Part shown: positions 4,834 through 45,026 of the stretch, piece after piece | Numbering within the stretch: position 1 is the first letter of the stretch | Layout: every line of letters starts with the position of its first letter | Origin: Octopus bimaculoides | Lineage: Eukaryota | NCBI RefSeq assembly: GCF_001194135.2 | Contig: NC_068990.1 | Span: forward strand, 11,649,601-11,695,415 | DNA length: 45,815 nucleotides | Direction: 5' to 3' | The notes under the pieces: generated by a model | The model's database searches: none | Told to the model about the DNA's origin: nothing | What the model saw: only the letters and a program-made list of their open reading frames with translations | Program-made: the position numbers and the translations under genes

Positions 4834-5356
4834 CGTGTTCATAGTAGAAACGTGATTACTATACATGTATTGATATTTGCTGTGGTAGTAAGATAGTCTG
4901 TATGTGTTCGTGTGTTTATAGCCAAAATATAATATACCAATTATTCACAGTTGTGTAACTAGATATCCTTCCAATATGCCATTAATTCAAATCAGTGTCT
5001 CATCATTTCCCGATGTGTGAATATTTTCAACATCTGGAGTTAATAGACCATGGTTGGTATTGGATATTATTTCATCATTAATCTATTACTCTCATTGGTT
5101 CGTAGCCCCAAGTCAGTTCAAGTGTAACAGACATATGGTCAGATTGGAGAGTGTAAAGAGCATTCCATAGCAAATCTAGGCTAGACATTACCCAATGTGG
5201 TCTTCTCTGCTTTAAATGCGGTAGGGTGAATTTCACGGAATATATAACTGCTGCTTGTGTAAAATCTACTTGTCATCGTCGTCGTCGTCCTCCTCCTCCT
5301 CCTCCTCATCATCATCATCACTTCATAGCCTTTAATTATTATTTTTATTATTATTT

Positions 5357-5478: not shown

Positions 5479-5480
<2 letters not shown>
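5357..5480 (+). mobile_element. SINE family A, 3' half
   Basis: GACTTTGCTTTTCATCCTTTTGGAGTCGATAAATTAAGTA...ATAGTAGAAAGGATC matches the other A copies. Confidence 0.85.
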
Positions 5481-5597
<117 letters not shown>

Positions 5598-9027: not shown

Positions 9028-9424
9028 TTCTCTTTCTCTGTTTCTCTTTTACTTGTTTCAGTCATTTGACTGCGGCCATGCTGGAGCACCACCTTTAGTC
9101 GACAAATCGACCCCAGGACTTTTTCTTTGGAAGCCTAGTACTTACACTATCGATCTCTTTTGCCGAACCGCCAAGTTACGGGGACGTAAACACACCACCA
9201 TCGGTTGTCAAGCGATGTTGGGAGGGACAAACACAGACACACAAACATATACATATATACATATATACGACGAGCTTCTTTCAGTTTCCGTCTATCAAGT
9301 CCACTCACAAAGCTTTGGTCGGCCCGAGGCTATAATAGAAGACACTTGCCCAAGGTGCCACGCAGTGGGAATGAACCCGGAATCATGTGGTTGGTAAGCA
9401 AGCTATTTACCACACAGCCACTCG
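9028..9424 (-). mobile_element. SINE family B, full length (head, CORE-like part, internal microsatellite, tail B)
   Basis: Reverse complement of 42805-43243 along its whole length. Confidence 0.92.
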
Positions 9425-10358: not shown

Positions 10359-10710
10359 ATTAGTTCCGCCTTAACAAAGGCAGAGGTATTGTTTTCAGTC
10401 GTGTATGTTTGTCCACGGACAAGATATCTCAAGAGCCACTAGATGGATTCGGATGAAACTTTCAGGGATGTTTGGCCTTGTGACTGGCACGAACTGATTA
10501 GATTTTGGTACCGGTACGGACAAGGATTCTGCATCATTTTTCCGTTTATTTTTTGCTTAATTTTTGAGAGCAGTCAGGTTCATTTTTAGTACCGTGAGAG
10601 CAGTCGAGTTTATTTCAGATATTCTCATTTTAAAAATCATCTCCGGCTAATCGTTGAGAGGACATTGGTGTTGCCTTGGTGGATTTTTGCGCTTTCTGAG
10701 TGCTCTTGTT
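10359..10710 (+). mobile_element. Non-autonomous Helentron-like (HINE/DINE-1-type) element
   Basis: 5' palindrome CCGCCTT-AAC-AAAGGCAG, degenerate subterminal inverted match GCCTTGGTGGA near the 3' end, 3' stem-loop GCGCT..TGAGTGC, ends in TTGTT. Architecture match only. Confidence 0.55.
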
Positions 10711-11001
10711 AATAATTTCTTGAGAAGGCGATGGTTTGGCAGAATCGTCAGCACGCCTGACAAAATGCTTAGCTGCATTTCGTCCGTCTTTATGTTCTGA
10801 GTTCAAATTCTACCGAGGTCGACTTTATCTTTCATCCTTTCGGAGTCGATAAAATAAGTTGCAGTTGAACACTGGGGTCGATGTAATCGATTATCCCCCT
10901 CCCCCTACAATTTCAGGCCTTGTGTCTATAGTAGAACTGATCATTAACTTCTTGAGAAGGCAGTGAGCTGGCAGAATCGTTAGCACGCCGGGCGAAATAC
11001 T

Positions 11002-11582
11002 GGATCTTTTTTAAAACGGGGGGCCACATTTTTCATTAACGAAACACTTTGAAACTTGGAACACTGGTAGAATGTGTCATATAAAACATCTTTTTCTCTT
11101 AGTCTTCTTTAAAAAAAAAGAAATCCATAAGTTATTCCATGTTAAAGTTGTCGTATTTCTGTAATTTCAACCAATCACTGACGTCCATTCAGCCGATATA
11201 CATTAAGTGCCGACTACATAAACAAACGATTCTGAAACAATTAACCCTAACCCTAACCCTAACCGTAGGGTTAGGGTTAGGGTTAGGGTTAAAGCAAATT
11301 TAAAATGAAAAAAGCAAATAAAACGAAGGTATGGAGATTAAATACGCTTTACATCGCTTAATCAGCCAAAGGAGTAAATATAAACAACTGAATACTTGTC
11401 AGTGATTGGTTGAAATAATCGAAATGAGACAATTTTTTACATGAAATAAATTCGAATACAAAAATATTTTTCTGTTCTATAACACAAAATAGATAAGTAT
11501 ACGAAGTTTGAAAGTCTTTCGGTACCAAAAACACTACGTAAAACATTAATGAAAAATGTGGCCCCCGTTTTAAAAAAGATCC
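11002..11582. mobile_element. Fold-back MITE with 37-38 bp TIRs and central telomeric-repeat hairpin
   Basis: TIR GGATCTTTTTTAAAACGGGGG(G)CCACATTTTTCATTAA at 11002-11039 and 11546-11582; perfect 19-bp internal inverted pair 11164-11182/11398-11416. Confidence 0.9.
11241..11292. repeat. Inverted telomeric-type repeats TTAA(CCCTAA)3CC-GTAG-GG(TTAGGG)3TTAA
   Basis: Perfect 24-bp stem with 4-nt loop. Confidence 0.95.
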
Positions 11583-13773
11583 CGCCGGACAAAATGCTTA
11601 GCAGTAATTCCTCCGTCTTTATGTTCAAATTCCACCGCGGTCGACTTTATCTTTTATCCTTTCAGGGTCGCTAAAATAAATTCCAGTTGAACACGGGTCG
11701 ATGTAATCGACTTAACCCTCCCTGAAATTATCAATTTCTTGAGAAGGCAGTGAGTTAGCAGAATAGTTAGCATGCCAGTCAATATACTTACCGACTTTTC
11801 GTCTGTCCTCGTGTTCTGAGTTCAAATTCCGCTGAGGTCGACTTTGCCTTTCATCCTTTCATGGTCAATAAAATAAGTACCAGTTGAACTCTGGGTCGGC
11901 GTAATCTACGTACCCCCACTCCTGAACTGTCTGGCCTTGTGCCAAATTTTGGAACTATAATTAATTTCTTGAGAAAGCTGAGAGCTGGCAGAATCGTTAG
12001 CACGCTTGGCAAAATGATTAGCAGCATTTCGTCCGTCTTTATGTTCTGAGTTCAAATTCCACCGAGGTCGACTTTACCGTTCATCGTTTCAGGATAGATA
12101 CAATATGTACCAGTTAAGAGCTGGGGTCGATATGATCAGCTTACCCACTCTCCAATAATAGTAGGCTTTGTATCTATAACAGAAAAGATTATTACTTTCT
12201 TGAGAAGCTAAGCATGATTTTTGTCATCAGCATGTAAACCCACATTAGTGTTGAAAATTTGAAGAAAAGATGTGATGCGAGGATGGATTTTAAAAAGATC
12301 CCCATGTGCCAGCAGTAACCAGAAAAACATAGCGCGTGGAAAGGAGAGGGATAAAAACAATAGAATCATTAATATTTCACATGAATCAACGAGGGATACG
12401 TATATTATTTCCTAACCTACTGAATAAAACAGTCAAACATCGTTACAAATCCACCCAACCGTGCAAAATAGCAGCAGTAGTAGTAGTGAGTGTCCATATT
12501 TGATAATGTCGTCATAGTTATGTGACTAACACATAGGTTGGCCGTAGCTAGGACTCCTTTCATCAAACATCAGGTCGACCAGAACTGATCTGGACCAAAC
12601 AAGAAAGAACATACTGAATAACGTAGTTTTAGTTATATGTCTGGGAAAATAAAAGGCTCTATAGTCTTTGCTAGAATGCTTTTTATCGTAGCATCAACGT
12701 TGTGATTTGGAATAAACCAAGCTTACGTTAGTTAAAATATGCTTGTGACATATTTGTAAAACTTGTAAAAAATTCACTGCAGTTTCCCCGAAGAAAGATA
12801 TGTTATTTTATGGTTAAAGATGTAAAAACACCATATCTGCAGGGTGATTTCCTCTAGCGGATTTCCAGATACGGGTTTCTGGTTATTTAGCTTCCTCAAT
12901 AGGAAATGCCGAAGAGCGACAGTCATGGACACAAGGTGCACATAGGCTATACCACATGGAAATGAAACATTGGTTGATATGTTCGTTGGTGCAATATGTT
13001 TGGAGAAATTACCAAATAGCCATAGCTGGAACACTTTTGATTATATGTTTCATTAATCAGATCTCATTTGTGCTAAACAAAGCGACTCAACACTAACGAT
13101 ACCACGAAAGCAGAACAAAAAAAGAGCTAAAAACAACGATGCAATCTCTCAAAGACGATGCAATTCGTAAGTTCAGGAATACAGAGATACACCCGACATG
13201 ACAACAAAATTTCAGTTGAAACTACTTAAAATATAAAAATATTAAACTCGATTATTTTTAGAATAAGTTCCATGCATTTGTGAGACAGGTTTTATGCAGT
13301 TTGAGATCGTTTTCATGCAATTTTTTTTTATATTGAGAAATGGGAAATATTCTAAAATTGGCCATGCTGCAGATGAGCTATGATGATAGTGATATCGGTG
13401 GTGAAGCTGACGAAAGCAATGATCCTGAAAGTGATGATGACATTGTGGAAACTATAAATAACCACGACAGCTTTAGAATCATGAATATAGCATCAACTTT
13501 TTATAAGGTTGCGTTCAGCTCTATCATTTATGCAATGATTACCCTAGCCTACACGCTGTGTGCGTGTGTGTGTGTTGCGAGTGTGAGGAAGATAATATGA
13601 ATGACGTTGAGAGGGAACCGAGGGTGTGTACATGAAGTGAATGGTACATAAATAATTTTCCTAATCACAAAAAAATAGTCATACATACGTACACAACCGT
13701 GCAGATACATATATATATATACTCACATACATATACACACATCTACGTGTGTGTGTATGTGTGTGTGTGTGTC

Positions 13774-14812: not shown

Positions 14813-15092
14813 CAAGAGGTTAGACAGAAGAAAAAAATTGTATTGACCCCCGAATGGGACAAAAATGTTTACCATGAAGCTTTGCAATAAGTTCCAAGTC
14901 GACATATATCATTGTCTTGATGAAAATTGTTCATTGCTTGAAAAACATTGGTCAAATTTAATAAAATTTAATATGTACTCTATACACGAAGTGTTATTGA
15001 TGAAGAGTCCTTCACAGGAGCTACATTAAAAGCTGCCCTATCGAGCAGCTTTTAAGCTAGTATATATTTATATGTGTGTGTGTGTGTGTGTG

Positions 15093-15246
15093 TGTGTTTA
15101 CGTGCTCGTGACCTAGCGGTTCGGCCTAACAGACCGATAGAATAAGTACTAGGCTTGCAAAGAATAAGTCCTCGGGGCAATTTGTTTGACTAAAAATAGT
15201 GCTCCATCATGGCCGCAGTCAAATGACTGAAACAGATAAAAGAATA
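15093..15246 (+). mobile_element. SINE B tail only
   Basis: GATAGAATAAGTACTAGGCTT...CAGTCAAATGACTGAAAC preceded by (GT)n. Confidence 0.88.
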
Positions 15247-15947
15247 ATTATTTTATGCCCAAAAATATACAAACGAGATTCTGATTTGTTAGTATATATA
15301 CTTTACATTATTGCATGACTTTGGAAGTCTCCTTTGGACTCGTTTATTTTATTCGATCTACTTCCCAGTATTTTTAACAGTATTCTGCGATGCGTTGGTG
15401 GTCATCTGCATCTGGGGAATCAAAAGAAGCTTTGGCGCCATTAACCTCCTCTCCAATGCTGGCTAATCCCATGATGTTTCATATTATTTTAAGTCACAAG
15501 TCACAGTCCCAGGTGTATATAAAATCTCATACATTATTGCATTTACTGAAGCGTGAAATTAATGATTGTTGAATACAATGATATATGTTATAGTGTATGA
15601 AATATTTCGCATTTATACACACGAGAAATGAACGTACATTAACGCAACTCGTTTGCTGATAACCAAAAGTGAAGGATGTACAACGACTTTTGACTCCAAC
15701 CAAATTATTATTACATATCCTTGACACACTTATGGTATCTCTTATGGCATTTTCAAATATGTAATTGCTTTATGAAATTCTGATACAACACAAACATTTC
15801 ATAAGATGCTTGCATAGAATTTACGTTAAGTCTTAAATTTCTGGGTATTTTATATTGCAAAGGCATGTTTAAGTTATTCGCTTGTTTTATTATAAGGCTG
15901 TTATATTCTAGTTTTTTAGCCCAACAAATCAACCCAAAGATAATTTT

Positions 15948-16258
15948 TTTAAAGCCTGGTACTAATTCTATCGGTGTCTTTTGCCGAACCGCTAAGTTAC
16001 AGGGGCGTAAACACACACCAACACCGGCTGTGAAGCGGTAGTGGGGAACTAACACAGACAAAAAGACACATATAGATATATACATATATATACGCCGAGT
16101 TTCTTTCAGTTTCCGTCTACCACATCTACTCACAAGGCTTTAGTCCGCCTGAGGCTAGAATAGAAGGCACTTGCCCAAGGTGCCATGCAGTGGGACTGGA
16201 CCCTGAACCATATGGCTGGGAAGCAAGCTTCTTACCCCACAGTCAAGCACGCACCTAT
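15948..16258 (-). mobile_element. SINE family B, 3' truncated
   Basis: Reverse complement match to head, microsatellite and first half of tail B. Confidence 0.88.
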
Positions 16259-17298
16259 TTTAATTTTTTTTTTTCTCTAAAAAAAAAACATGCCAAGCAG
16301 AAAGAAAAGAGACTACCTGGAGTGAAAGGAAATGAACGATGTTGCAAATCAAGAAAAAGTCACAAAAATATTGATTGTATGATTTGCTTTCCATTTTGAC
16401 ATATACTTGAGGTCTGCTCAACTGAAACGGAAATCTGCTTCATCCTTGGAGAGGGATCTTAGGAACACTTGCTGGTTTCTATTTTCAGCCCGGAAACTGA
16501 CCACAGTTGTCTGAGTACTGCATATCCACAAGCCGTGCGAAGGGCACCTCAGAAACATATGACTACTTACACTATCACCCACAATATGAAGACGACGCAG
16601 TAAAACCAAGCGATCTTATGCACACATACACAAAATAAATACCCGCTTTGTGAAACACCTTTAACATTGTACACGCTCCTCTTGTGTTAGACCCTTGTCA
16701 TTCTAGTCAAAAACGCAATTTTAACAATTTTTTCAGAGAAAGAAGGACGTCATTTCATTATAACTTGAAACAAATTAATCATTGTTGTGAAATAAATTAG
16801 TTATGATTGATTTACTATTATCATTCCTTTTGTTCCCCATGCACAAATACGTGTGTATTCACCATTATTTATTTTATTCGATTTTAGAAAAAAATGAAGC
16901 ATGTCTTTGATAATTCCGGAGTATATTGATCTTCTTTTCTGCGTGGCTTTTGGCTCACCCTCCATATTGAAGAGTAAATTACTAAATAAGTCAATCAGTT
17001 TCTCCATTTATCTACAGAGAAAGTACTTTAGATCAGAACATATCTGAATTCATTGCTTTTTGAAAACGTTAAAAGAAATTATGTGAAATTGTGTGAAATT
17101 ATGAATCTCAATTCAAACAAGATTCAGAAGGAAGCAATCGAGTTGGCTTGAAGATATGACATTTATACGAAATACAAACAACATAGAGAGAATATAAAAG
17201 ACAAACATTCCATTATGAAGCTCTTTCAGGATGAAGGTATATATGCCGTGCGACTGAAATGCATACTTTATTATATTACTTAGTTACTTTAGATTCTT

Positions 17299-17961
17299 AA
17301 TATCTTCAGCTTTACAAGGAATGGCGAGCTGGCAAAAGCGTTAGCATGCTGGGCAAGCGCTTTCCAGCATTTCGTCTGTCTTTATGTTCTGAGTTCAAAT
17401 TCCGCGAGGGGTCGATTTTGGTTTTCGTACTTTCGATGTAGATAAAATAAGTACCAGTTGCACACTGGAGCCAATTTAATCGACTTATCTCCTCCCTCGA
17501 AATTGTTAGCCTTTTAAGCTATTTCAAACCAATATCTTTAGCCTTACATAGGGCAGCAAGCTGGCCGAAACGTTAGCGAGCCGGGCGAAATGCTTCCCGG
17601 TATTTCGTCTGCCGTTACGTTCTGAGTTCAAATTCCGCCGAGGTAGACTTTGCATTTCATCCTTTCCGGGTCGATAAACTAAGTACCAGTTACGCAATTG
17701 TTTGTCCCCTCCATGTTTAGCCCATTGTGGGCAATAAAGAAATAAGAACCGTTAGCAGGCCGGGCAAATTGCTTTGCGATATTTCATCCGTATTTATCTT
17801 CTGAGTTCAAATTCCATCGAGTTCGGCTTCGCTTTTCATCCTTTTAGGGTCGATAGAATAAGTAACAGTTGAACACTAGGGGGTCGATGCAATCGTCTTG
17901 TCACCAACCCGACATTGCTGGCCTAGTGCCAAAATATGAAACCAATATCTCTAGCTTTACA
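17299..17961 (+). repeat. Second target-repeat/SINE-A array (three SINE bodies, three 18-bp repeats)
   Basis: AATATCTTCAGCTTTACA 17299-17316, AATATCTTTAGCCTTACA 17531-17548, AATATCTCTAGCTTTACA 17944-17961; SINE bodies start near 17317, 17551, 17747. Confidence 0.88.
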
Positions 17962-18160: not shown

Positions 18161-18633
18161 TTTCACTTTTAATGCCACTAGTAAAAGTGTTGGAAGATTT
18201 TCAAAATACAGTTTATAAATGTAGTGCTTTACATCCAGAGCATTTTGACTAAGCAGGTAATGTTAACAAGATAGAACTTTAACCGACACATATTCAGACG
18301 TAACACGCAATCAAATCAAATTCGTAACTAAAGATTATTTAATTCAAAGACACGTACAAAACTATAATGAGCACTAGCAGTATGGTAAATTCAAGTTTCG
18401 AGCAACCATCAGCAACGAATATTCATGATGATGAATGACAATCTTACATTCAGCCTAAACTTTTAACACAGTGTTTTTCTTTTCTAAGCCTATCAACAGC
18501 TTAGGTAATTGTTGAACGATCATTAAGACGCAGTCACATGTGTTCGTCCGGAGTTCTACACCAAGTAAGGACAGATTGCTGAAATTAGCTTTTGCCCTCT
18601 AGGGAAAAGCAGTCAGCTACTAAGGTGATTTAT

Positions 18634-18847: not shown

Positions 18848-18955
18848 AAGGTAGATTGTAAATTACTGGATTTGCAGGAGTGTAAGACATTCTCGCATAA
18901 GTCGTACCCACTTTGTTACAAGAATATGTTGTGAAAAAAAAAGAAACTTAGTATG

Positions 18956-19033
18956 CAAGTGTTTTCTATTATAGCCTCAGGCCGACTAAACCATGTACGA
19001 GGATTTGGTAGACGGAAACTGAAAGAAGCTCGC

Positions 19034-19034
<1 letters not shown>
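18956..19034 (+). mobile_element. SINE B CORE-like fragment running into (GT)n and a gap
   Basis: GGATTTGGTAGACGGAAACTGAAAGAAGC hallmark. Confidence 0.85.
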
Positions 19035-19082
<48 letters not shown>

Positions 19083-20386
19083 NNNNNNNNNNNNNNNNNN
19101 NNNNNNNNNNNNNNNNNNNNNNNNNNNNNNNNNNNNNNNNNNNNNNNNNNNNNNNNNNNNNNNNNNNNNNNNNNNNNNNNNNNNNNNNNNNNNNNNNNNN
19201 NNNNNNNNNNNNNNNNNNNNNNNNNNNNNNNNNNNNNNNNNNNNNNNNNNNNNNNNNNNNNNNNNNNNNNNNNNNNNNNNNNNNNNNNNNNNNNNNNNNN
19301 NNNNNNNNNNNNNNNNNNNNNNNNNNNNNNNNNNNNNNNNNNNNNNNNNNNNNNNNNNNNNNNNNNNNNNNNNNNNNNNNNNNNNNNNNNNNNNNNNNNN
19401 NNNNNNNNNNNNNNNNNNNNNNNNNNNNNNNNNNNNNNNNNNNNNNNNNNNNNNNNNNNNNNNNNNNNNNNNNNNNNNNNNNNNNNNNNNNNNNNNNNNN
19501 NNNNNNNNNNNNNNNNNNNNNNNNNNNNNNNNNNNNNNNNNNNNNNNNNNNNNNNNNNNNNNNNNNNNNNNNNNNNNNTTTTTTTTTTTTTTTTTTTTCC
19601 TTTTTAACAAAATTATATCCGCTGTATCGGAAATCTACAAAAGTTCCATAGTTCCATAGCTCCTGTCTCGGTTACTCGGTTACGAGCTTGGAACCCTAGT
19701 AATCCGTTACACCCACTTACCCAGCATACCTATCCGTTTAGATCACCTGTGAACTAAACTCCAATACACACACACACACACACACAGTCGCTAATTTTAC
19801 CGATCCTGGGGAGGGCGCGTATTTTTGCCTTTATCCTTTTTGAGAATTGAAGTAAGCGTGGGGTGAGGAAGAATGACTGAAAAACACTGCTCTAAAGCAA
19901 ACCAACATCTCATGCTGTTAAATCCTTTTACGCAACTTCAGTTTCCATAGGCTGACCATTACGTACGAATGCTGGGTCATCGCAGCCACTTTACCTCAAG
20001 GTTAGTAAAAGTTAAACAAAAACGCGGAGGGCAAAGGAAATCGCTTAAAAGCGAACTTAAATGGAATTTGAACAAGGATAGCATTAACGTGTATAACTGA
20101 GAACTTGGATGACTACATATGTACATTCATATATATGTACACACACACATATATATGTACACACACACAAAAGAAAATTTACTTTAAGACACATAAATGT
20201 GTACGTATATGTGTTCATGTCTGTCTTTTAGTGTATGGTGGAATTCATCTATTTTGAGTTTGCTTCCGAGTGTTTGCATATATGAGTGTGTGTGTGTGTA
20301 GTGTATATACACATATATACATACAACATGCATACATACATACATTATATATATTACATACATACATACATTATATACATTACGTT

Positions 20387-21219: not shown

Positions 21220-21430
21220 AAAGCGGTGGATTAGCAGAATTGTAAGCCTAACAAAATAACTTGTAATATTTATTCTGGCTCTTAAGGTTCAGTGTTAAGA
21301 ATCTCACCGGGGTCAGCTTTTGTTTATTATTCTTCAGAAGTCGATAAGATAAAGTACAAGTCAAGTGCCATTTGTCCAATTAACCAACATCTCGCTCCCC
21401 ACAAATTTGTGACTTTGTACCTCTGTTACA
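21220..21430 (+). mobile_element. Old, diverged SINE family A copy
   Basis: AAGCGGTGGATTAGCAGAATTGTAAGC head and GTCGATAAGATAAAGTAC body. Confidence 0.6.
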
Positions 21431-22142
21431 ACAATTATTTACACTTCTATCCCTTCTACTTCTCCATATTTTTATTAGCCCTACACCCTTCCTAACTATA
21501 TATCTGCCCTATCTATCTAACTACTCTTGTTGGCTTACTCATCTGATTAACTTACAAGTTTGCGATCACCTCTCTGTCATTTATCCAGTTTCGTTATCTC
21601 GTACACTCTACAAACGCCATGCAGGCAATATTTCCAGCAGCTTTGGTCCACCCAAATAGCAAAGAAACAATACAAAGCATGAAATGCCTTGGATCAAATA
21701 AGACAAACTCTGGTGTCATGTAAAAGCTCACAACTTCTTTCACTTGAAGAGAATGCCACCCAACTTAACACAACTTGGCTTGGCTCTTTAGCACACATTT
21801 AACAGGGTTCACTCTGTGGCAATTATTCGGACAAGTCTCTTAGTTGAAGATGATATAGCCTCAAGATACGCCGCTTTCCTTTATGAAACACTACTAAATA
21901 CAAATGGCAAATGGGAGCTGGTGTGTATTTTATTTAAACGCTTTCAGGCTGAACGAAGTACTGCAGCCTGATCGCGTTTAAACCAATGTTTCCTAAACTA
22001 TTTTATCCCGGCCCAACTATAACTTTCCTCCGGGAAAATGTATGCTCCACGGGTGTTTGGAAATAAAACATCTTTAAAATATTTTATCATTAAATACTTT
22101 CCTTAAAGAAATATCCACTCTAGGGAATTAGAGTAGAGCTAT

Positions 22143-22359
22143 ATTCTTTTCTACTCTAGGTACAAGGTCCGAAATTTTGAGGGAGTGGGACAAGTCGATT
22201 AAATCGATCCCAGTACGCAACTGATATTTAATTTATCGACCCCAAAAGGATGAAAGGCAAATTCGACCTCGGCGGAATTTGAACTCAGAATATAAAGACA
22301 GACGAAATACCGCTAAGTATTTCGCTCGGCTGCTAACGTTTCTGCCAGCTCGCCACCTT
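22143..22359 (-). mobile_element. SINE family A with 18-bp TSD
   Basis: Flanks TTAGAGTAGAGCTATATT and TTAGAATAGTGCTGTATT (15/18 identical). Confidence 0.92.
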
Positions 22360-22413
22360 AGAATAGTGCTGTATTGCAGCAAACAGTCTTCACACAGTGT
22401 CCTTGGTTGGATG

Positions 22414-22647
22414 TTTCTCATTTCTTTACTGCCCAAAAGGGGCTAAACATAGAGGAGACAAACAAGGACAGACAAACGGATTAAGTCGATTATATCGATC
22501 CCGATGCGTGACTGATACTTATTTAATCGACCCCGAAAGGACGAAAGACAAAATCAACCTCGGCGGAATTTGAACTCAGGACGTAGCGCCGAGCGAAATA
22601 CAGCTAAGCGTTTCGTCCAGCGTGGAAACGATTCTGCCAGCTCACCG
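22414..22647 (-). mobile_element. SINE family A, tail subtype 3 (ends GGGCAGTAAAGAAAT)
   Basis: Same tail as copies at 25524, 26593 and 17551. Confidence 0.92.
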
Positions 22648-22712
22648 TAGTAGTAGTAGCAGTAGTAGTAGTAGTAGTAGTCATCGTCGTCGTCGTCGTC
22701 GTTTCAAATTTT

Positions 22713-22915
22713 AAGGCGGTGAGCTGGCAGAAACGTTAGCACGCTGGCCGAAATGGTTCGCGGTATTTCGTCTGTCTTTACGTTCTGAGTTCAAATTCCG
22801 CCGGGGTCGACTTTGCTTTTCATCCCTTCGGGGTCGGTAAATTAAATACCAGTTGTTTACTGTGGTCGGTCTAATCGACTGACACCCTACCAAAAAAATT
22901 TTCGGGCCTTGTAGA
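22713..22915 (+). mobile_element. SINE family A
   Basis: AAGGCGGTGAGCTGGCAGAAACG...GAGTTCAAATTCCGCCGG. Confidence 0.92.
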
Positions 22916-22918
22916 ATA

Positions 22919-23250
22919 GTTTGAAATTTTGCCACAAGGACAGCCATTTTTGGGAAGAGAACTAATCTATTACATCGATCCAGTGTTTCACTGGCACTTA
23001 ATTTATCGACCCCGAAAGGATGAAAAGCAAAGTCAACCTCGGCGGAATTTGAACTCAGAATGTGAAGACAGACGAAATACCGCTAAGCATTCCGCCCGGC
23101 GTGCTAACGATTCTGCCAGCTCGCCGACTTAACATAATAATAATGATAATAATCCTTTCCAATTTTTGGCACTAGGCCAGCAATTTTGATGCTAGGGGAA
23201 AAATCATTATATCGACCCGGTGCTCAAATAGTATTTATTTTATCGAACCC
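22919..23250 (-). mobile_element. SINE family A (22919-23130) plus a further tail fragment (23152-23250)
   Basis: Reverse-complement matches; tail-to-tail with the 22713 copy. Confidence 0.88.
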
Positions 23251-23834
23251 AATAATATGCTACGCAAAGTAGATTAATACTATAAAATATATAATACGAG
23301 CATAACCGCCTTACAGAAAGTCGGTTTACAGAATTTACAGGATTCTGCACTCATGAAAATTTTAGTACATCGCCACTAATTTTGAGATGTGTGTGTATGC
23401 GTTTGTGTGTACCTGCGTGTGTAAACGTGTATGCGTCTGTGCATTCGTGTGTACGTTTGTGTGCATGCGCATGTCTGTGTTTATGTGTGAATGTCAGTCG
23501 GTTATAATCCCTAATGCACTTGTAAAAACGCCTTAGCTAGTGACAAAATTTTGCTAGAAAATGTCAGATTCGTTATTATATTGATAACAAGTCACGGGGA
23601 CATTCGAAAAAATTTTAGAATAAATCCTGACTAATGCCAAACTTTTTTCTAGAAAGTGTCAAATTCGTTATTTTAGTGATTCAAAAGTCATTTGGATGAT
23701 CTGAAAACGATTTTCGTGTGTTTCAGAAATTTATTTTTGGATACGTCTTACACAAATTTTCTCAAAGCCAAGTCCGTTTTGAATAATTTCTTTGACGCAA
23801 GCATAACAAATTTGTATTACTTGTCACTTCGTCA

Positions 23835-24872: not shown

Positions 24873-25523
24873 AAATTATACATTATATGTGTGTGTTAGA
24901 GTAAATACAGCTGTATTAATAAAACGGACATATATATATATATATATATATATANNNNNNNNNNNNNNNNNNNNNNNNNNNNNNNNNNNNNNNNNNNNNN
25001 NNNNNNNNNNNNNNNNNNNNNNNNNNNNNNNNNNNNNNNNNNNNNNNNNNNNNNNNNNNNNNNNNNNNNNNNNNNNNNNNNNNNNNNNNNNNNNNNNNNN
25101 NNNNNNNNNNNNNNNNNNNNNNNNNNNNNNNNNNNNNNNNNNNNNNNNNNNNNNNNNNNNNNNNNNNNNNNNNNNNNNNNNNNNNNNNNNNNNNNNNNNN
25201 NNNNNNNNNNNNNNNNNNNNNNNNNNNNNNNNNNNNNNNNNNNNNNNNNNNNNNNNNNNNNNNNNNNNNNNNNNNNNNNNATATATATATATATATATAT
25301 ATAGCTACTATGAGGTGTGCGTGAGCATATAAGAATGTATGTATGGTTTATTATGATTATTATTATTATTATTACTTTTATTATGGAAAACAGTTTGTTT
25401 CGTACAGAAGCCTAGCTCATTCAGACTCGTTCGGTAATCTGAGCCTGAACGACTCGAATCAAAATGCTTTCAACAACGTATGTGTGTGAATGCGTGCATG
25501 CATGCATTCACACACATACATTT

Positions 25524-26955: not shown

Positions 26956-27104
26956 ATAGGCGCAGGAGTGGCTGCGTGGTACGTAGCTTGCTTACTAACC
27001 ACGTGGTTTCGGGTTCAGGCCCNNNNNNNNNNNNNNNNNNNNNNNNNNNNNNNNNNNNNNNNNNNNNNGAGTGGATTTGGTAGACGGAAACTGAAAGAAG
27101 CTTG

Positions 27105-27154
<50 letters not shown>

Positions 27155-27337
27155 CCACCATCGCTTGACAACCGATGTTGGTGTGTTTATGTCCCCGTAA
27201 CTTAGTGGTTCACCAAAAGACACCGATAGAATAAGTACTAAGCTTGCAAAGAATAAGTCCTGGGGTCGATTTGTTCGACTAAAGGCGATGCTCCAGCATG
27301 GCTGCAATCAAATGACTGAAACGAATAAAATAATAAA
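26956..27337 (+). mobile_element. SINE family B nested in the mariner 5' UTR
   Basis: Head, gap, CORE-like part, (GT)n, tail B. Confidence 0.92.
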
Positions 27338-29279: not shown

Positions 29280-29495
29280 GTATATGTTTGTGTGTCTGTG
29301 TTTGTCCCTCCAACATCGCTTGACAACCGATGGTGGTGTGTTTACGTCCCCGTAATTTAGCGGTTCGGCAAAAGAGTCACTAATAGAATAAGTACTAGGC
29401 TTACAAAGAATAAGTCCTAGTTTCGATTTGTTCCACTAAAGGCGGTGCTCCAGCATGGCCACAGTCAAATGATTGAAACAAGTAAAAAAGTAAAA
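29280..29495 (+). mobile_element. SINE B tail preceded by microsatellite
   Basis: Matches 43060-43243. Confidence 0.9.
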
Positions 29496-39023: not shown

Positions 39024-39047
39024 ACAACAGCTACTACTACTACAACA

Positions 39048-39107
<60 letters not shown>

Positions 39108-39456
39108 ACTACTACTACTGCTACTACTACTACTTCTACTGCTGCTGCTGCTGCTACTACTAACATCACCACTATTATCACTACAAGTACTTCTACCAGC
39201 ACAACCGCCACCACTACTACAGCAACTAACTACTAAATAGTTCCACAGCTACCACCACCACTAAAATCACTACTAAAACTACTACTACCACTACAACCTC
39301 TATTACTTTTACTATCATCGCCACCATTTCTACAATCACTACTACAACTACCATCACCACAACTACCACCATCACTACTACTACAGTTACCACTACCATC
39401 TCTGCTACCACCACTTCCACAACCACCACCATCTACCACTACAACTACTACTGCTG

Positions 39457-39488
<32 letters not shown>

Positions 39489-39697
39489 GCAATCACCATC
39501 ACCACCGCTACCACCACTTTCACAACCACCACCAGCACCATCTACCACTACAACTACTACTGCTACTACTACTACTACCACCACCATCAACACCACCACC
39601 ACCACCACTTCCAATACTACCACACCACCATCCACCACCACCACTACTACTATCACCAGCACTATCACTACTACTACCACCACCACCACCACTACAA
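39024..39697. repeat. Long degenerate trinucleotide tract (ACT/ACC/GCT)
   Basis: Directly visible; internal ~60-bp duplication at about 39412 and 39516. Confidence 0.93.
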
Positions 39698-40233: not shown

Positions 40234-40246
40234 ATANNNNNNNNNN

Positions 40247-40550: not shown

Positions 40551-40761
40551 TAGGGTGAGCCAGAAGTCATGCACCAAAACATTTGACGTTTTATTTATAT
40601 TAAATTATTATCATTATTATTCATTTTGCTCATCATGTACAGTTACATGTGTAGCCATCATTATTATATTTATTTTATTCAATTTTTAGAAGCACTGAAG
40701 CATGACTTTGACAATTCTGTAGAGTATTGAAGTTACTGGAGCATGAATTTGGCCCGCCCTG
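40551..40761. mobile_element. Tc1/mariner-type MITE, 211 bp, TA-flanked
   Basis: Left TAGGGTGAGCCAGAAGTCATGCACCA vs right reverse complement CAGGGCGGGCCAAATTCATGCTCCA; TA at 40549-40550 and 40762-40763. Confidence 0.75.
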
Positions 40762-42804: not shown

Positions 42805-43243
42805 TAGGCATAGGAGTGATTGTGAGGTAAGTAGCTTGCTTACCAACCACATGGTTCTGGGTTCAGTCCCACTGCATGGTACCTTGGGCAAGTGTCTTCT
42901 ACTATAGCCTCGGGCCAACCAAAGCCTTGTGAGTGGATTTGGTAGGCGGAAACTGAAAGAAGCCTGTCGCATATATGTGTATATATATATGTGTGTGTGT
43001 GTGTGTGAGTGTGTGTCTGTGTGTGTGTGTGTGTGTCTGTGTGTGTGTGTCTGTGTTTGTCCCCCCATCATCGCTTGACAACCGATGCTGGTGTGTTTAC
43101 GTCCCCATAACTTAGCGGTTCGGCAAAAGAGACCGATAGAATAAGTACTCGGCTTCCAAAGAATAAGTCCTGGGGTCGATTTGCTCGACTAAAAGCGGTG
43201 CTCCAGCATGGCCACAGTGAAATGACTGAAACAAGTAAAAGAG
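42805..43243 (+). mobile_element. SINE family B, full length
   Basis: Head with GGTTCAGTCCC B-box-like motif, CORE-like ACCTTGGGCAAGTGTCTT, internal (TA)/(GT)n, tail ending GTAAAAGAG. Confidence 0.93.
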
Positions 43244-44680: not shown

Positions 44681-45026
44681 CCCACTGCGTGGCATCTTGG
44701 GCAAGTGTCTTCTGCTATAGCTTCAGGCCGACCAAAGCCTTGTGAGTGGATTTGGTAGACAGAAATTGAAAGAAGCCCGTCGTATATATGTATATATATA
44801 TATATGTATGTGTGTTTGTGTGTCTGTGTTTGTTCCCCCAAACATCGCTTGACACCCGATGCTGGTGTGTTTACGTCCCCATAACTTAGCGGTTCGGCAA
44901 AAGAGACCAATAGAATAAGTACTAGGCTTCCAAAGAATAAGTCCAGGGGTCGATTTGCTTGACTAAAGGCGGTGCTCCAGCATGGCCACAGTCAAAAGAC
45001 TGAAACAAGTAAAAGAGTAAAAGAGT
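44681..45026 (+). mobile_element. SINE family B, 5' truncated
   Basis: Near-identical to 42868-43243; (GTAAAAGA)2 tail. Confidence 0.92.

Follow-up and report, generated by a model that had tools for sequence, protein, structure and literature searches.

A tandem array of short interspersed elements with target-like spacers at a locus of Octopus bimaculoides

How does a short interspersed element (SINE) come to stand four times in a row at one site, with one short sequence repeated between neighboring copies and again at either end? The question is raised by a locus in Octopus bimaculoides within a 45,815-nucleotide stretch of contig NC_068990.1 (NCBI RefSeq assembly GCF_001194135.2, positions 11,649,601 to 11,695,415 of the forward strand), hereafter the window. 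The locus, array A, occupies positions 10711-12207 of the window and has the order X-A1-X-A2-X-A3-X-A4-X, in which A1 to A4 are head-to-tail SINE units of ~215 bp and X is one of five spacers of ~17 nt. We favor, with moderate confidence, the explanation that SINEs were repeatedly inserted by a target-primed route into one good site, each insertion preserving the target while duplicating it. A first-pass annotation of the window had likewise proposed repeated re-targeting with the same cut geometry. We find this to be the best explanation for at least one unit, given the subtype of A3, the absence of clustering among the units, a spacer as long as a target-site duplication (TSD) and the presence of a second array, array B, whereas A1, A2, and A4 may be copies made by unequal exchange.

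We built an nhmmer profile from nine copies of the SINE and ran it over the 45.8-kb window, obtaining 22 matches of a short, dispersed element of ~217 bp on both strands, which we call SINE-A. All comparisons between SINE copies draw on these ~22 sequences from a single 45-kb window. Solitary copies at 18632 (minus strand), 22141 (minus strand), and 23836 (plus strand) are flanked by locus-specific TSDs of ~17-19 nt, and TSDs likewise surround both arrays. The 22 copies on both strands, together with these locus-specific duplications, indicate that the element behaves as a SINE. Array A is made up of the following features.

10711 to 10727, plus strand: spacer X1 (AATAATTTCTTGAGAAG), which retains the original upstream flank
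10728 to 10942, plus strand: SINE unit A1, full length, tail subtype 1 (..CTATAGTAGAACTGATCAT); nhmmer profile positions 2-217, 215 bits
10943 to 10959, plus strand: spacer X2 (ATTAACTTCTTGAGAAG)
10960 to 11001, plus strand: SINE unit A2, 5' part, cut by a foldback element; profile positions 2-43
11002 to 11582, no strand assigned: 581-bp foldback insertion in A2, resembling a miniature inverted-repeat transposable element
11583 to 11729, plus strand: SINE unit A2, 3' part; profile positions 28-185
11730 to 11746, plus strand: spacer X3 (ATCAATTTCTTGAGAAG)
11747 to 11959, plus strand: SINE unit A3, full length, tail subtype 2 (..GGCCTTGTGCCAAATTTTGGAACTATAAT); nhmmer 199 bits
11960 to 11976, plus strand: spacer X4 (ATTAATTTCTTGAGAAA)
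11977 to 12190, plus strand: SINE unit A4, full length, tail subtype 1 (..CTATAACAGAAAAGATTAT); nhmmer 206 bits
12191 to 12207, plus strand: spacer X5 (ATTACTTTCTTGAGAAG), followed by unique flank

Each junction of the array has a single spacer, and a further one closes either outer end; successive spacers start 232, 787, 230, and 231 nt apart. The positions and sequences of the five spacers had been given exactly in the first-pass annotation, which also quoted the tails correctly. Within the spacer, the last 11 nt (the core, TTCTTGAGAAG) are nearly invariant and the first 6 nt are variable. Allowing one mismatch, the core occurs six times in the window against 1.15 expected, a count reached in 0 of 100 shuffles. 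Five of these matches are the spacers, and the sixth, at 21330, is a chance one-mismatch match in an unrelated SINE copy; apart from it, neither the other ~18 SINE copies nor any further part of the window contains the core. After X5, nhmmer finds no further SINE until 17322.

The boundaries between units and spacers carry an ambiguity of 1-3 nt at both ends. The nhmmer bounds of the units are 10728-10944, 10960-11001 plus 11583-11729, 11747-11961, and 11977-12192, and the AT-rich end of the SINE tail (GATTAT/AAT) overlaps with the opening 4-6 nt of each spacer (ATTAAY/ATCAAT), leaving the 3' boundary between SINE and TSD uncertain by a few bases. At the 5' junctions the upstream TSD copy reads NA+AG versus NAG in the downstream copy, and the AG at the 3' end of the spacer is probably the SINE's own 5' end. 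We rejected AAG, which precedes 9 of 12 SINE 5' ends, as a top-strand nick motif, because downstream TSD copies keep only the A (NAG versus NAAG).

Whether the four units are duplicates of one another was examined through their tails, their bodies, and their spacers. SINE copies in the window fall into three 3' subtypes, ending in ..CTATAGTAGAAAAGATTAT (sub1), ..GTGCCAAAATTTTGAAACYAAT (sub2), and ..GGGCAGTAAAGAAATAA (sub3). The sub3 copies have a different 3' region of ~60 nt, and the sub1 and sub2 tails are diverged versions of a single tail, their consensuses agreeing at 20 of 29 positions. Nine diagnostic sites separate the sub1 and sub2 consensuses built from copies outside array A. At these sites A1 carries seven sub1 states and one sub2 state, A4 seven and none, and A3 two and six. 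By a hand estimate that assumes 15% divergence and equal base choice, the chance that a sub1 duplicate would decay to six specific sub2 states is ~1e-6, and A3 is therefore an independent arrival or a gene-converted unit rather than a decayed sub1 duplicate. Judged by these tails, array A needs at least two independent arrivals (A3 of subtype 2, and the subtype-1 lineage of A1 and A4) or one gene conversion. The earlier description of four units with mixed tail subtypes thus holds for A3 relative to A1 and A4; it needs amending in that the second unit is split by the foldback and has no tail, and in that the tails are versions of one.

The SINE bodies lead in the same direction. Distances among the units of array A are 0.15-0.25, compared with 0.11-0.30 among unrelated dispersed copies. 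Neighbor-joining bootstrap values are 2% for A1-A4 together and 14% for A1+A2+A4, and B3, a unit from the other locus, nests among them. The units form neither a supported clade nor one subtype, contrary to what plain tandem duplication would give; clustering to the exclusion of dispersed copies, which the first-pass annotation had named as the sign of such duplication, was not found.

The spacers are better conserved than most of the sequence between them. Mean pairwise identity is 0.88 for the 17-nt spacer and 0.95 for the 11-nt core, versus an average of 0.70 over 196 SINE-internal 17-nt windows, a comparison weakened by the spacer being short and without CpG and by 7.7% of the internal windows being as conserved, several of the top ones at regions resembling A and B boxes. 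This difference is only suggestive of spacers that changed by post-insertion decay alone and units that also differ by their source genes. Divergence from the consensus is 12.5% for A1, 11.3% for A2, 16.4% for A3, and 13.8% for A4. Because these ages overlap within sampling error, the order of insertion cannot be read from them, and the earlier suggestion that the array records an ordered insertion history is not supported.

A second array, array B, lies ~5 kb from array A, has its own spacer (AATATCTTYAGCYTTACA), and follows the order XB-B1-XB-B2·B3-XB.

17299 to 17316, plus strand: spacer XB1 (AATATCTTCAGCTTTACA)
17317 to 17530, plus strand: SINE B1, subtype-2-like tail (..TTTCAAACC)
17531 to 17548, plus strand: spacer XB2 (AATATCTTTAGCCTTACA)
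17549 to 17741, plus strand: SINE B2, subtype 3, tail ..TTTAGCCCATTGTGGGCAATAAAGAAATAA, abutting B3 without a spacer
17742 to 17943, plus strand: SINE B3, subtype 2, ~11-14 nt short at the 5' end
17944 to 17961, plus strand: spacer XB3 (AATATCTCTAGCTTTACA), followed by unique flank

The spacer of array B is present in three copies, with one unrelated match at two mismatches and 0.46 matches expected. Unit pairs are 0.28-0.31 apart, and each unit is nearer to dispersed copies than to its neighbors. The tail of B3 agrees with the sub2 consensus at 28 of 29 positions, B3 itself being one of the four input copies. The junction between B2 and B3 could plausibly stem from template switching in the course of a single insertion, or else from a nested insertion that deleted a little of the target. 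Sequence flanking either array has no second copy in the window, bar one short, weak match (Bup against 40613-40730, 75% over 118 nt), so that the window offers no paralogous empty site.

We then considered what could bring several SINEs to one position. Under random insertion of 22 copies into 43,966 non-N bases, a hand calculation gives ~0.003 expected pairs at exactly the same site and on the same strand, so either the site must be strongly preferred or the units must have been duplicated locally. A loose preference for a motif would favor a small fraction of positions in this way. X1 with positions 10709-10710 reads TTAATAATTTCTTGAG, and XB1 with positions 17297-17298 reads TTAATATCTTCAG; the 5'-most sites of both arrays (10709-10724 and 17297-17309) share TTAATA-N(0-3)-TCTTSAG. 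This motif, defined post hoc from the two sites, matches the window nowhere else (0.03 matches expected), and only ~5 solitary TSDs are available for comparison. The motif may possibly represent the preferred target of the partner long interspersed element (LINE). The solitary TSDs are unrelated except for an AT-rich start and a YA end, and they open with AWTA-like bases that overlap the end of the SINE tail (GATTAT/GAATAT/CAAT). The length of the spacers, 17-19 nt, equals that of the solitary TSDs (~17-19 nt).

In the mechanism that we propose for repeated insertion, the endonuclease of the partner LINE would nick the bottom strand at the start of the AT-rich site (..TTAATA|..), and a nick in the top strand ~17 nt downstream would lead to duplication of 17 nt. 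Target-primed reverse transcription would begin with pairing between the nicked AT-rich target and the AT-rich 3' end of the SINE RNA. One insertion would yield U-X-SINE-X-D, in which the upstream X retains its original left context and the downstream X sits behind the AT-rich end of the SINE tail (GATTAT/AAT), which mimics that context. The left flank of array A reads TTAATAAT, and the SINE tails read GATCATTAAC, CTATAATTAAT, and GATTATTAC. With the left context kept upstream and mimicked downstream, both copies of X would stay usable, and every new insertion would add one unit and one equally long spacer. What we infer in this model is where the nicks fall, that microhomology between tail and target plays a part, and which motif is targeted. 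A stronger version, in which occupied sites would outcompete equivalent empty ones because the AT-rich tail recreates or improves the microhomology and nick context, would make arrays common in this cephalopod genome, let the rich get richer from sites that match TTAATA..TCTTSAG, mix subfamilies in order of arrival, and seed SINE-derived satellites; we think it improbable.

Several observations weigh against repeated insertion, and some of them speak for an alternative in which one SINE and its TSD were duplicated by unequal exchange or slippage between the 17-nt TSDs, after which the array grew by unequal exchange and diverged and unit 3 was gene-converted. The regular period of 230-232 bp in array A would follow from such growth. 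At columns 105, 140, and 88, variants that are private or rare are shared among A1, A2, and A4, including a G>A substitution at column 105 that is common to all three and absent from 15 other copies, and a further one at column 140 that unites A1 and A2. Sites common to at least three units are more numerous in A1-A4 than in 96-98% of random quartets, which places this quartet in the top 2-4%, many of the sites being CpG transitions or family polymorphisms. The variants shared by A1, A2, and A4 fit either local duplication or a shared sub-subfamily, and these three units could be independent insertions or unequal-exchange copies made after a dimer had formed. A2 lacks the final ~30 nt of the SINE (the GGCCTTGTG.. 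tail), the 3' tail required for SINE retrotransposition, so that a later deletion of ~30 nt or an origin other than retrotransposition must be assumed for it. If a dispersed subtype-2 copy had converted one unit, in a tract ending at the SINE borders, the spacers would have stayed intact just as under insertion. Array B alone is no proof of independent insertions, both of its spacer-flanked elements being subtype-2-like and B2 having no spacer of its own. The partner LINE, which would be expected to carry the SINE tail form ..GGCCTTGTG..GAAAAGATTAT, was not found in the window, where neither the sub1 nor the sub2 tail is present outside SINE copies. Duplication would, however, need an extra event, a full or 3' conversion, to give A3 its six of nine sub2 tail sites, and its initiation would need recombination on only 17 nt. 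It leaves the units as distant from one another as unrelated copies and without support as a clade, does not account for spacer divergence that is roughly half that of the units in either array (judged by eye for array B), and does not predict two arrays within 45 kb at sites that share a motif, or that a second SINE-like family in the same window forms no arrays. Duplication followed by conversion between subfamilies had also been offered in the first-pass annotation; the substitution private to A1, A2, and A4 and the sparing of spacers by conversion speak in its favor, and the missing clade support against it. We regard it as unlikely, though by no means negligible.

Two further readings fare worse. 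The arrays could be an artifact of a short-read scaffold in which dispersed SINE copies were joined, the true locus having fewer units, and the scaffold is indeed gapped, with five N runs (990-1960, 19083-19578, 24955-25280, 27023-27068, and 40237-40246), in a SINE-saturated genome with 22 copies in 44 kb. Yet neither array contains a gap, no two tail-spacer-head junctions have the same sequence, an assembler would have had no other source in the window for the spacer core, and units 15-25% apart are not easily collapsed or chained; we consider misassembly very unlikely. Just as unlikely is the idea that SINE plus spacer, or the whole block, is the unit of a larger dispersed repeat or satellite, with the spacer as family sequence. 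The spacer does begin with 4-6 nt that overlap the consensus of the SINE tail, and SINE-derived satellites exist in molluscs (PMC11121367), but the core is found neither in the other ~18 SINE copies nor elsewhere in the window, array B has a different spacer, the flanks of the arrays are unique in the window, and the upstream flank carries a spacer with no SINE before it. Single-event origins for array A, by template switching, dimeric read-through transcripts, or rolling-circle extrachromosomal circular DNA, were rejected, because such events would not put target sequence between units of different subfamilies at the donor locus.

The foldback element arrived later than the unit A2 that it interrupts. 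It has terminal inverted repeats of ~38 bp with one mismatch and internal inverted repeats of 49-55 nt (~80%), and its center is a perfect palindrome in which the telomere-type repeats (TAACCC)4 and (TAGGGT)4 face each other. On either side lies a duplicated stretch of its SINE target (CGCCGGGCGAAATRCT), at ~16 nt unusually long, the two copies of which differ by three transitions. No second copy of this 581-bp element is present in the window. An Rfam search of the array (E<=1) returned only weak miRNA-like matches, to the foldback palindrome and to microsatellites, far below gathering scores.

We also looked for the origin and coding capacity of the SINE. Motifs resembling an A box (TAGCACGCCGG) and a B box (GTTCAAATTCC) stand ~50 nt apart in the head of the consensus, as recognized by eye only, and a tRNA origin of the head is plausible; ARAGORN detected no tRNA in the array, and Rfam gave no tRNA match at E<=1. 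On the antisense strand of the consensus one frame is open over all 72 codons (for example 22913-23126, minus strand). The 72-aa product has no relatives in the protein collection searched, and the open frame is probably fortuitous. Two scans of metagenomes with the conserved SINE core, using a 29-mer and then a degenerate 28-mer, gave no match, and there is no entry on record for an 86-aa open reading frame (ORF) near the array. Neither a reverse transcriptase nor an endonuclease nor any other Pfam domain was found in the seven window ORFs of at least 120 aa that are clear of gaps. Long multi-frame ORFs at 759-2224 and 18953-19659 were rejected as artifacts of N runs.

The surrounding DNA is AT-rich eukaryotic sequence (GC 37.5%) that is rich in microsatellites, and several of the N-run gaps adjoin such repeats. 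Five SINE-A copies in both orientations lie within 1.1 kb at 22141-23272. Among them, the copy at 22716 (plus strand) is inserted in reverse into the tail of the copy at 22913 (minus strand), with a TSD (GTTTSAAATTTT) made of that tail, and the 22913 copy in turn begins directly after the (ATT)n-like tail of a 5'-truncated copy at 23150 (minus strand). From this arrangement, SINE tails seem to be favored targets. Microsatellites also stand at SINE ends, namely (TTC)n(TTA)n directly after the tail of the copy at 5355 (5479-5597), (GTA)n and (CGT)n between the copies at 22478 and 22716 (22648-22700), and an ATT-rich run after the tail of the copy at 23150 (23127-23150), a placement that suggests repeat expansion seeded by tails. 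The largest simple-repeat block in the window is an imperfect CTA/CAC-type trinucleotide tract of ~660 bp at 39031-39695, with periods of 3, 15, and 24.

The second SINE-like family is ~155 bp long and has at least seven copies in the window, all solitary.

9045 to 9195, minus strand: second SINE-like family
15092 to 15247: second SINE-like family
15913 to 16024, minus strand: second SINE-like family
27181 to 27336: second SINE-like family
29336 to 29493: second SINE-like family
43091 to 43242: second SINE-like family
44865 to 45020: second SINE-like family

Because this family is always solitary, array formation is a property of SINE-A rather than of the region. Its copies at 15092, 27181, and 43091 adjoin a (TG)n/(CA)n microsatellite, as does 9195. 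The center of the second family (GACCGATAGAATAAGTACTAG) resembles that of SINE-A (GTCGATAAAATAAGTACCAG), and the SINE-A profile weakly matches 27224-27282; a central domain may be common to both families.

If multiple insertion is the true origin of array A, the machinery of the partner LINE would have a marked target preference, its cut geometry would be reproducible at a given site, and different SINE subfamilies would share it. Two arrays in 45 kb suggest that the pattern is frequent in this SINE-saturated genome. Were it so, such arrays could record target choice and mark the onset of SINE-derived satellites, by a route that has been documented in Drosophila. Sites that are used more than once would also breach the assumption that SINE insertions are free of homoplasy when they serve as phylogenetic markers.

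These properties invite comparison with known systems. Site-specific retrotransposons without long terminal repeats, such as R1 and R2 in ribosomal DNA (rDNA), re-use one target with a fixed nick geometry that gives TSDs of constant length. The octopus arrays resemble them in the re-use of one target and in constant TSD length. They differ in that the two spacers are not the same and the solitary TSDs are unrelated, which points to a loose motif preference rather than to one defined target.

SINEs that gather at one locus offer another comparison. The proliferation of CanSINEs in Felidae often targeted existing CanSINE loci, producing tandem arrays (Walters-Conte et al. 2014, PMC4084570). Those hot spots share with the octopus locus the occurrence of several independent SINE insertions per locus, whereas their TSDs are different, though overlapping, and their insertions fall mostly in different lineages (PMC4084570); in the octopus the TSD is identical, with both cuts the same, within one genome. 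In the mollusc Patella, the satellite PcH-sat derives from Nin-SINE (PMC11121367), another mollusc SINE in tandem, of which the octopus arrays could represent a nascent stage. Mollusc SINE satellites are, however, long homogeneous arrays of a truncated fragment for which no TSD-type spacer is reported (PMC11121367), in contrast to four heterogeneous units with TSD spacers. A limited search of open-access text returned no report of cephalopod SINE arrays of this kind.

The closest likeness is to double insertion, in which an element that makes TSDs and has a target preference preserves its target while creating a new one (McGurk & Barbash 2018, PMC5932611). Dimers of the P-element and of hobo carry an 8-bp TSD at the junction, and the Drosophila R1 array carries a 33-nt rDNA TSD at every junction; tandem sites match the preferred motif more tightly, and dimers can later expand by unequal exchange (PMC5932611). 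With the dimers and arrays of R1, P, hobo, and bacterial insertion sequences (PMC5932611), array A shares the head-to-tail order and the single TSD at each junction and both ends. It departs from these cases (PMC5932611) in that the element is a non-autonomous SINE at a site that is not a fixed multicopy gene target, in that as many as four units, from two subfamilies or more, stand at one site, and in that the octopus arrays are old (11-16% from the consensus) and short. The first-pass annotation had put the locus forward as a candidate for an undescribed system, a view that the published accounts of TSD-duplicating tandem insertion (PMC5932611) and of tandem arrays at SINE hot spots (PMC4084570) overturn. 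The locus is most likely a clean example of the known double-insertion outcome, not a new system. It stands out for how many units are stacked, for mixing subfamilies around a regenerated spacer that stays the same, and for the occurrence of two arrays within 45 kb.

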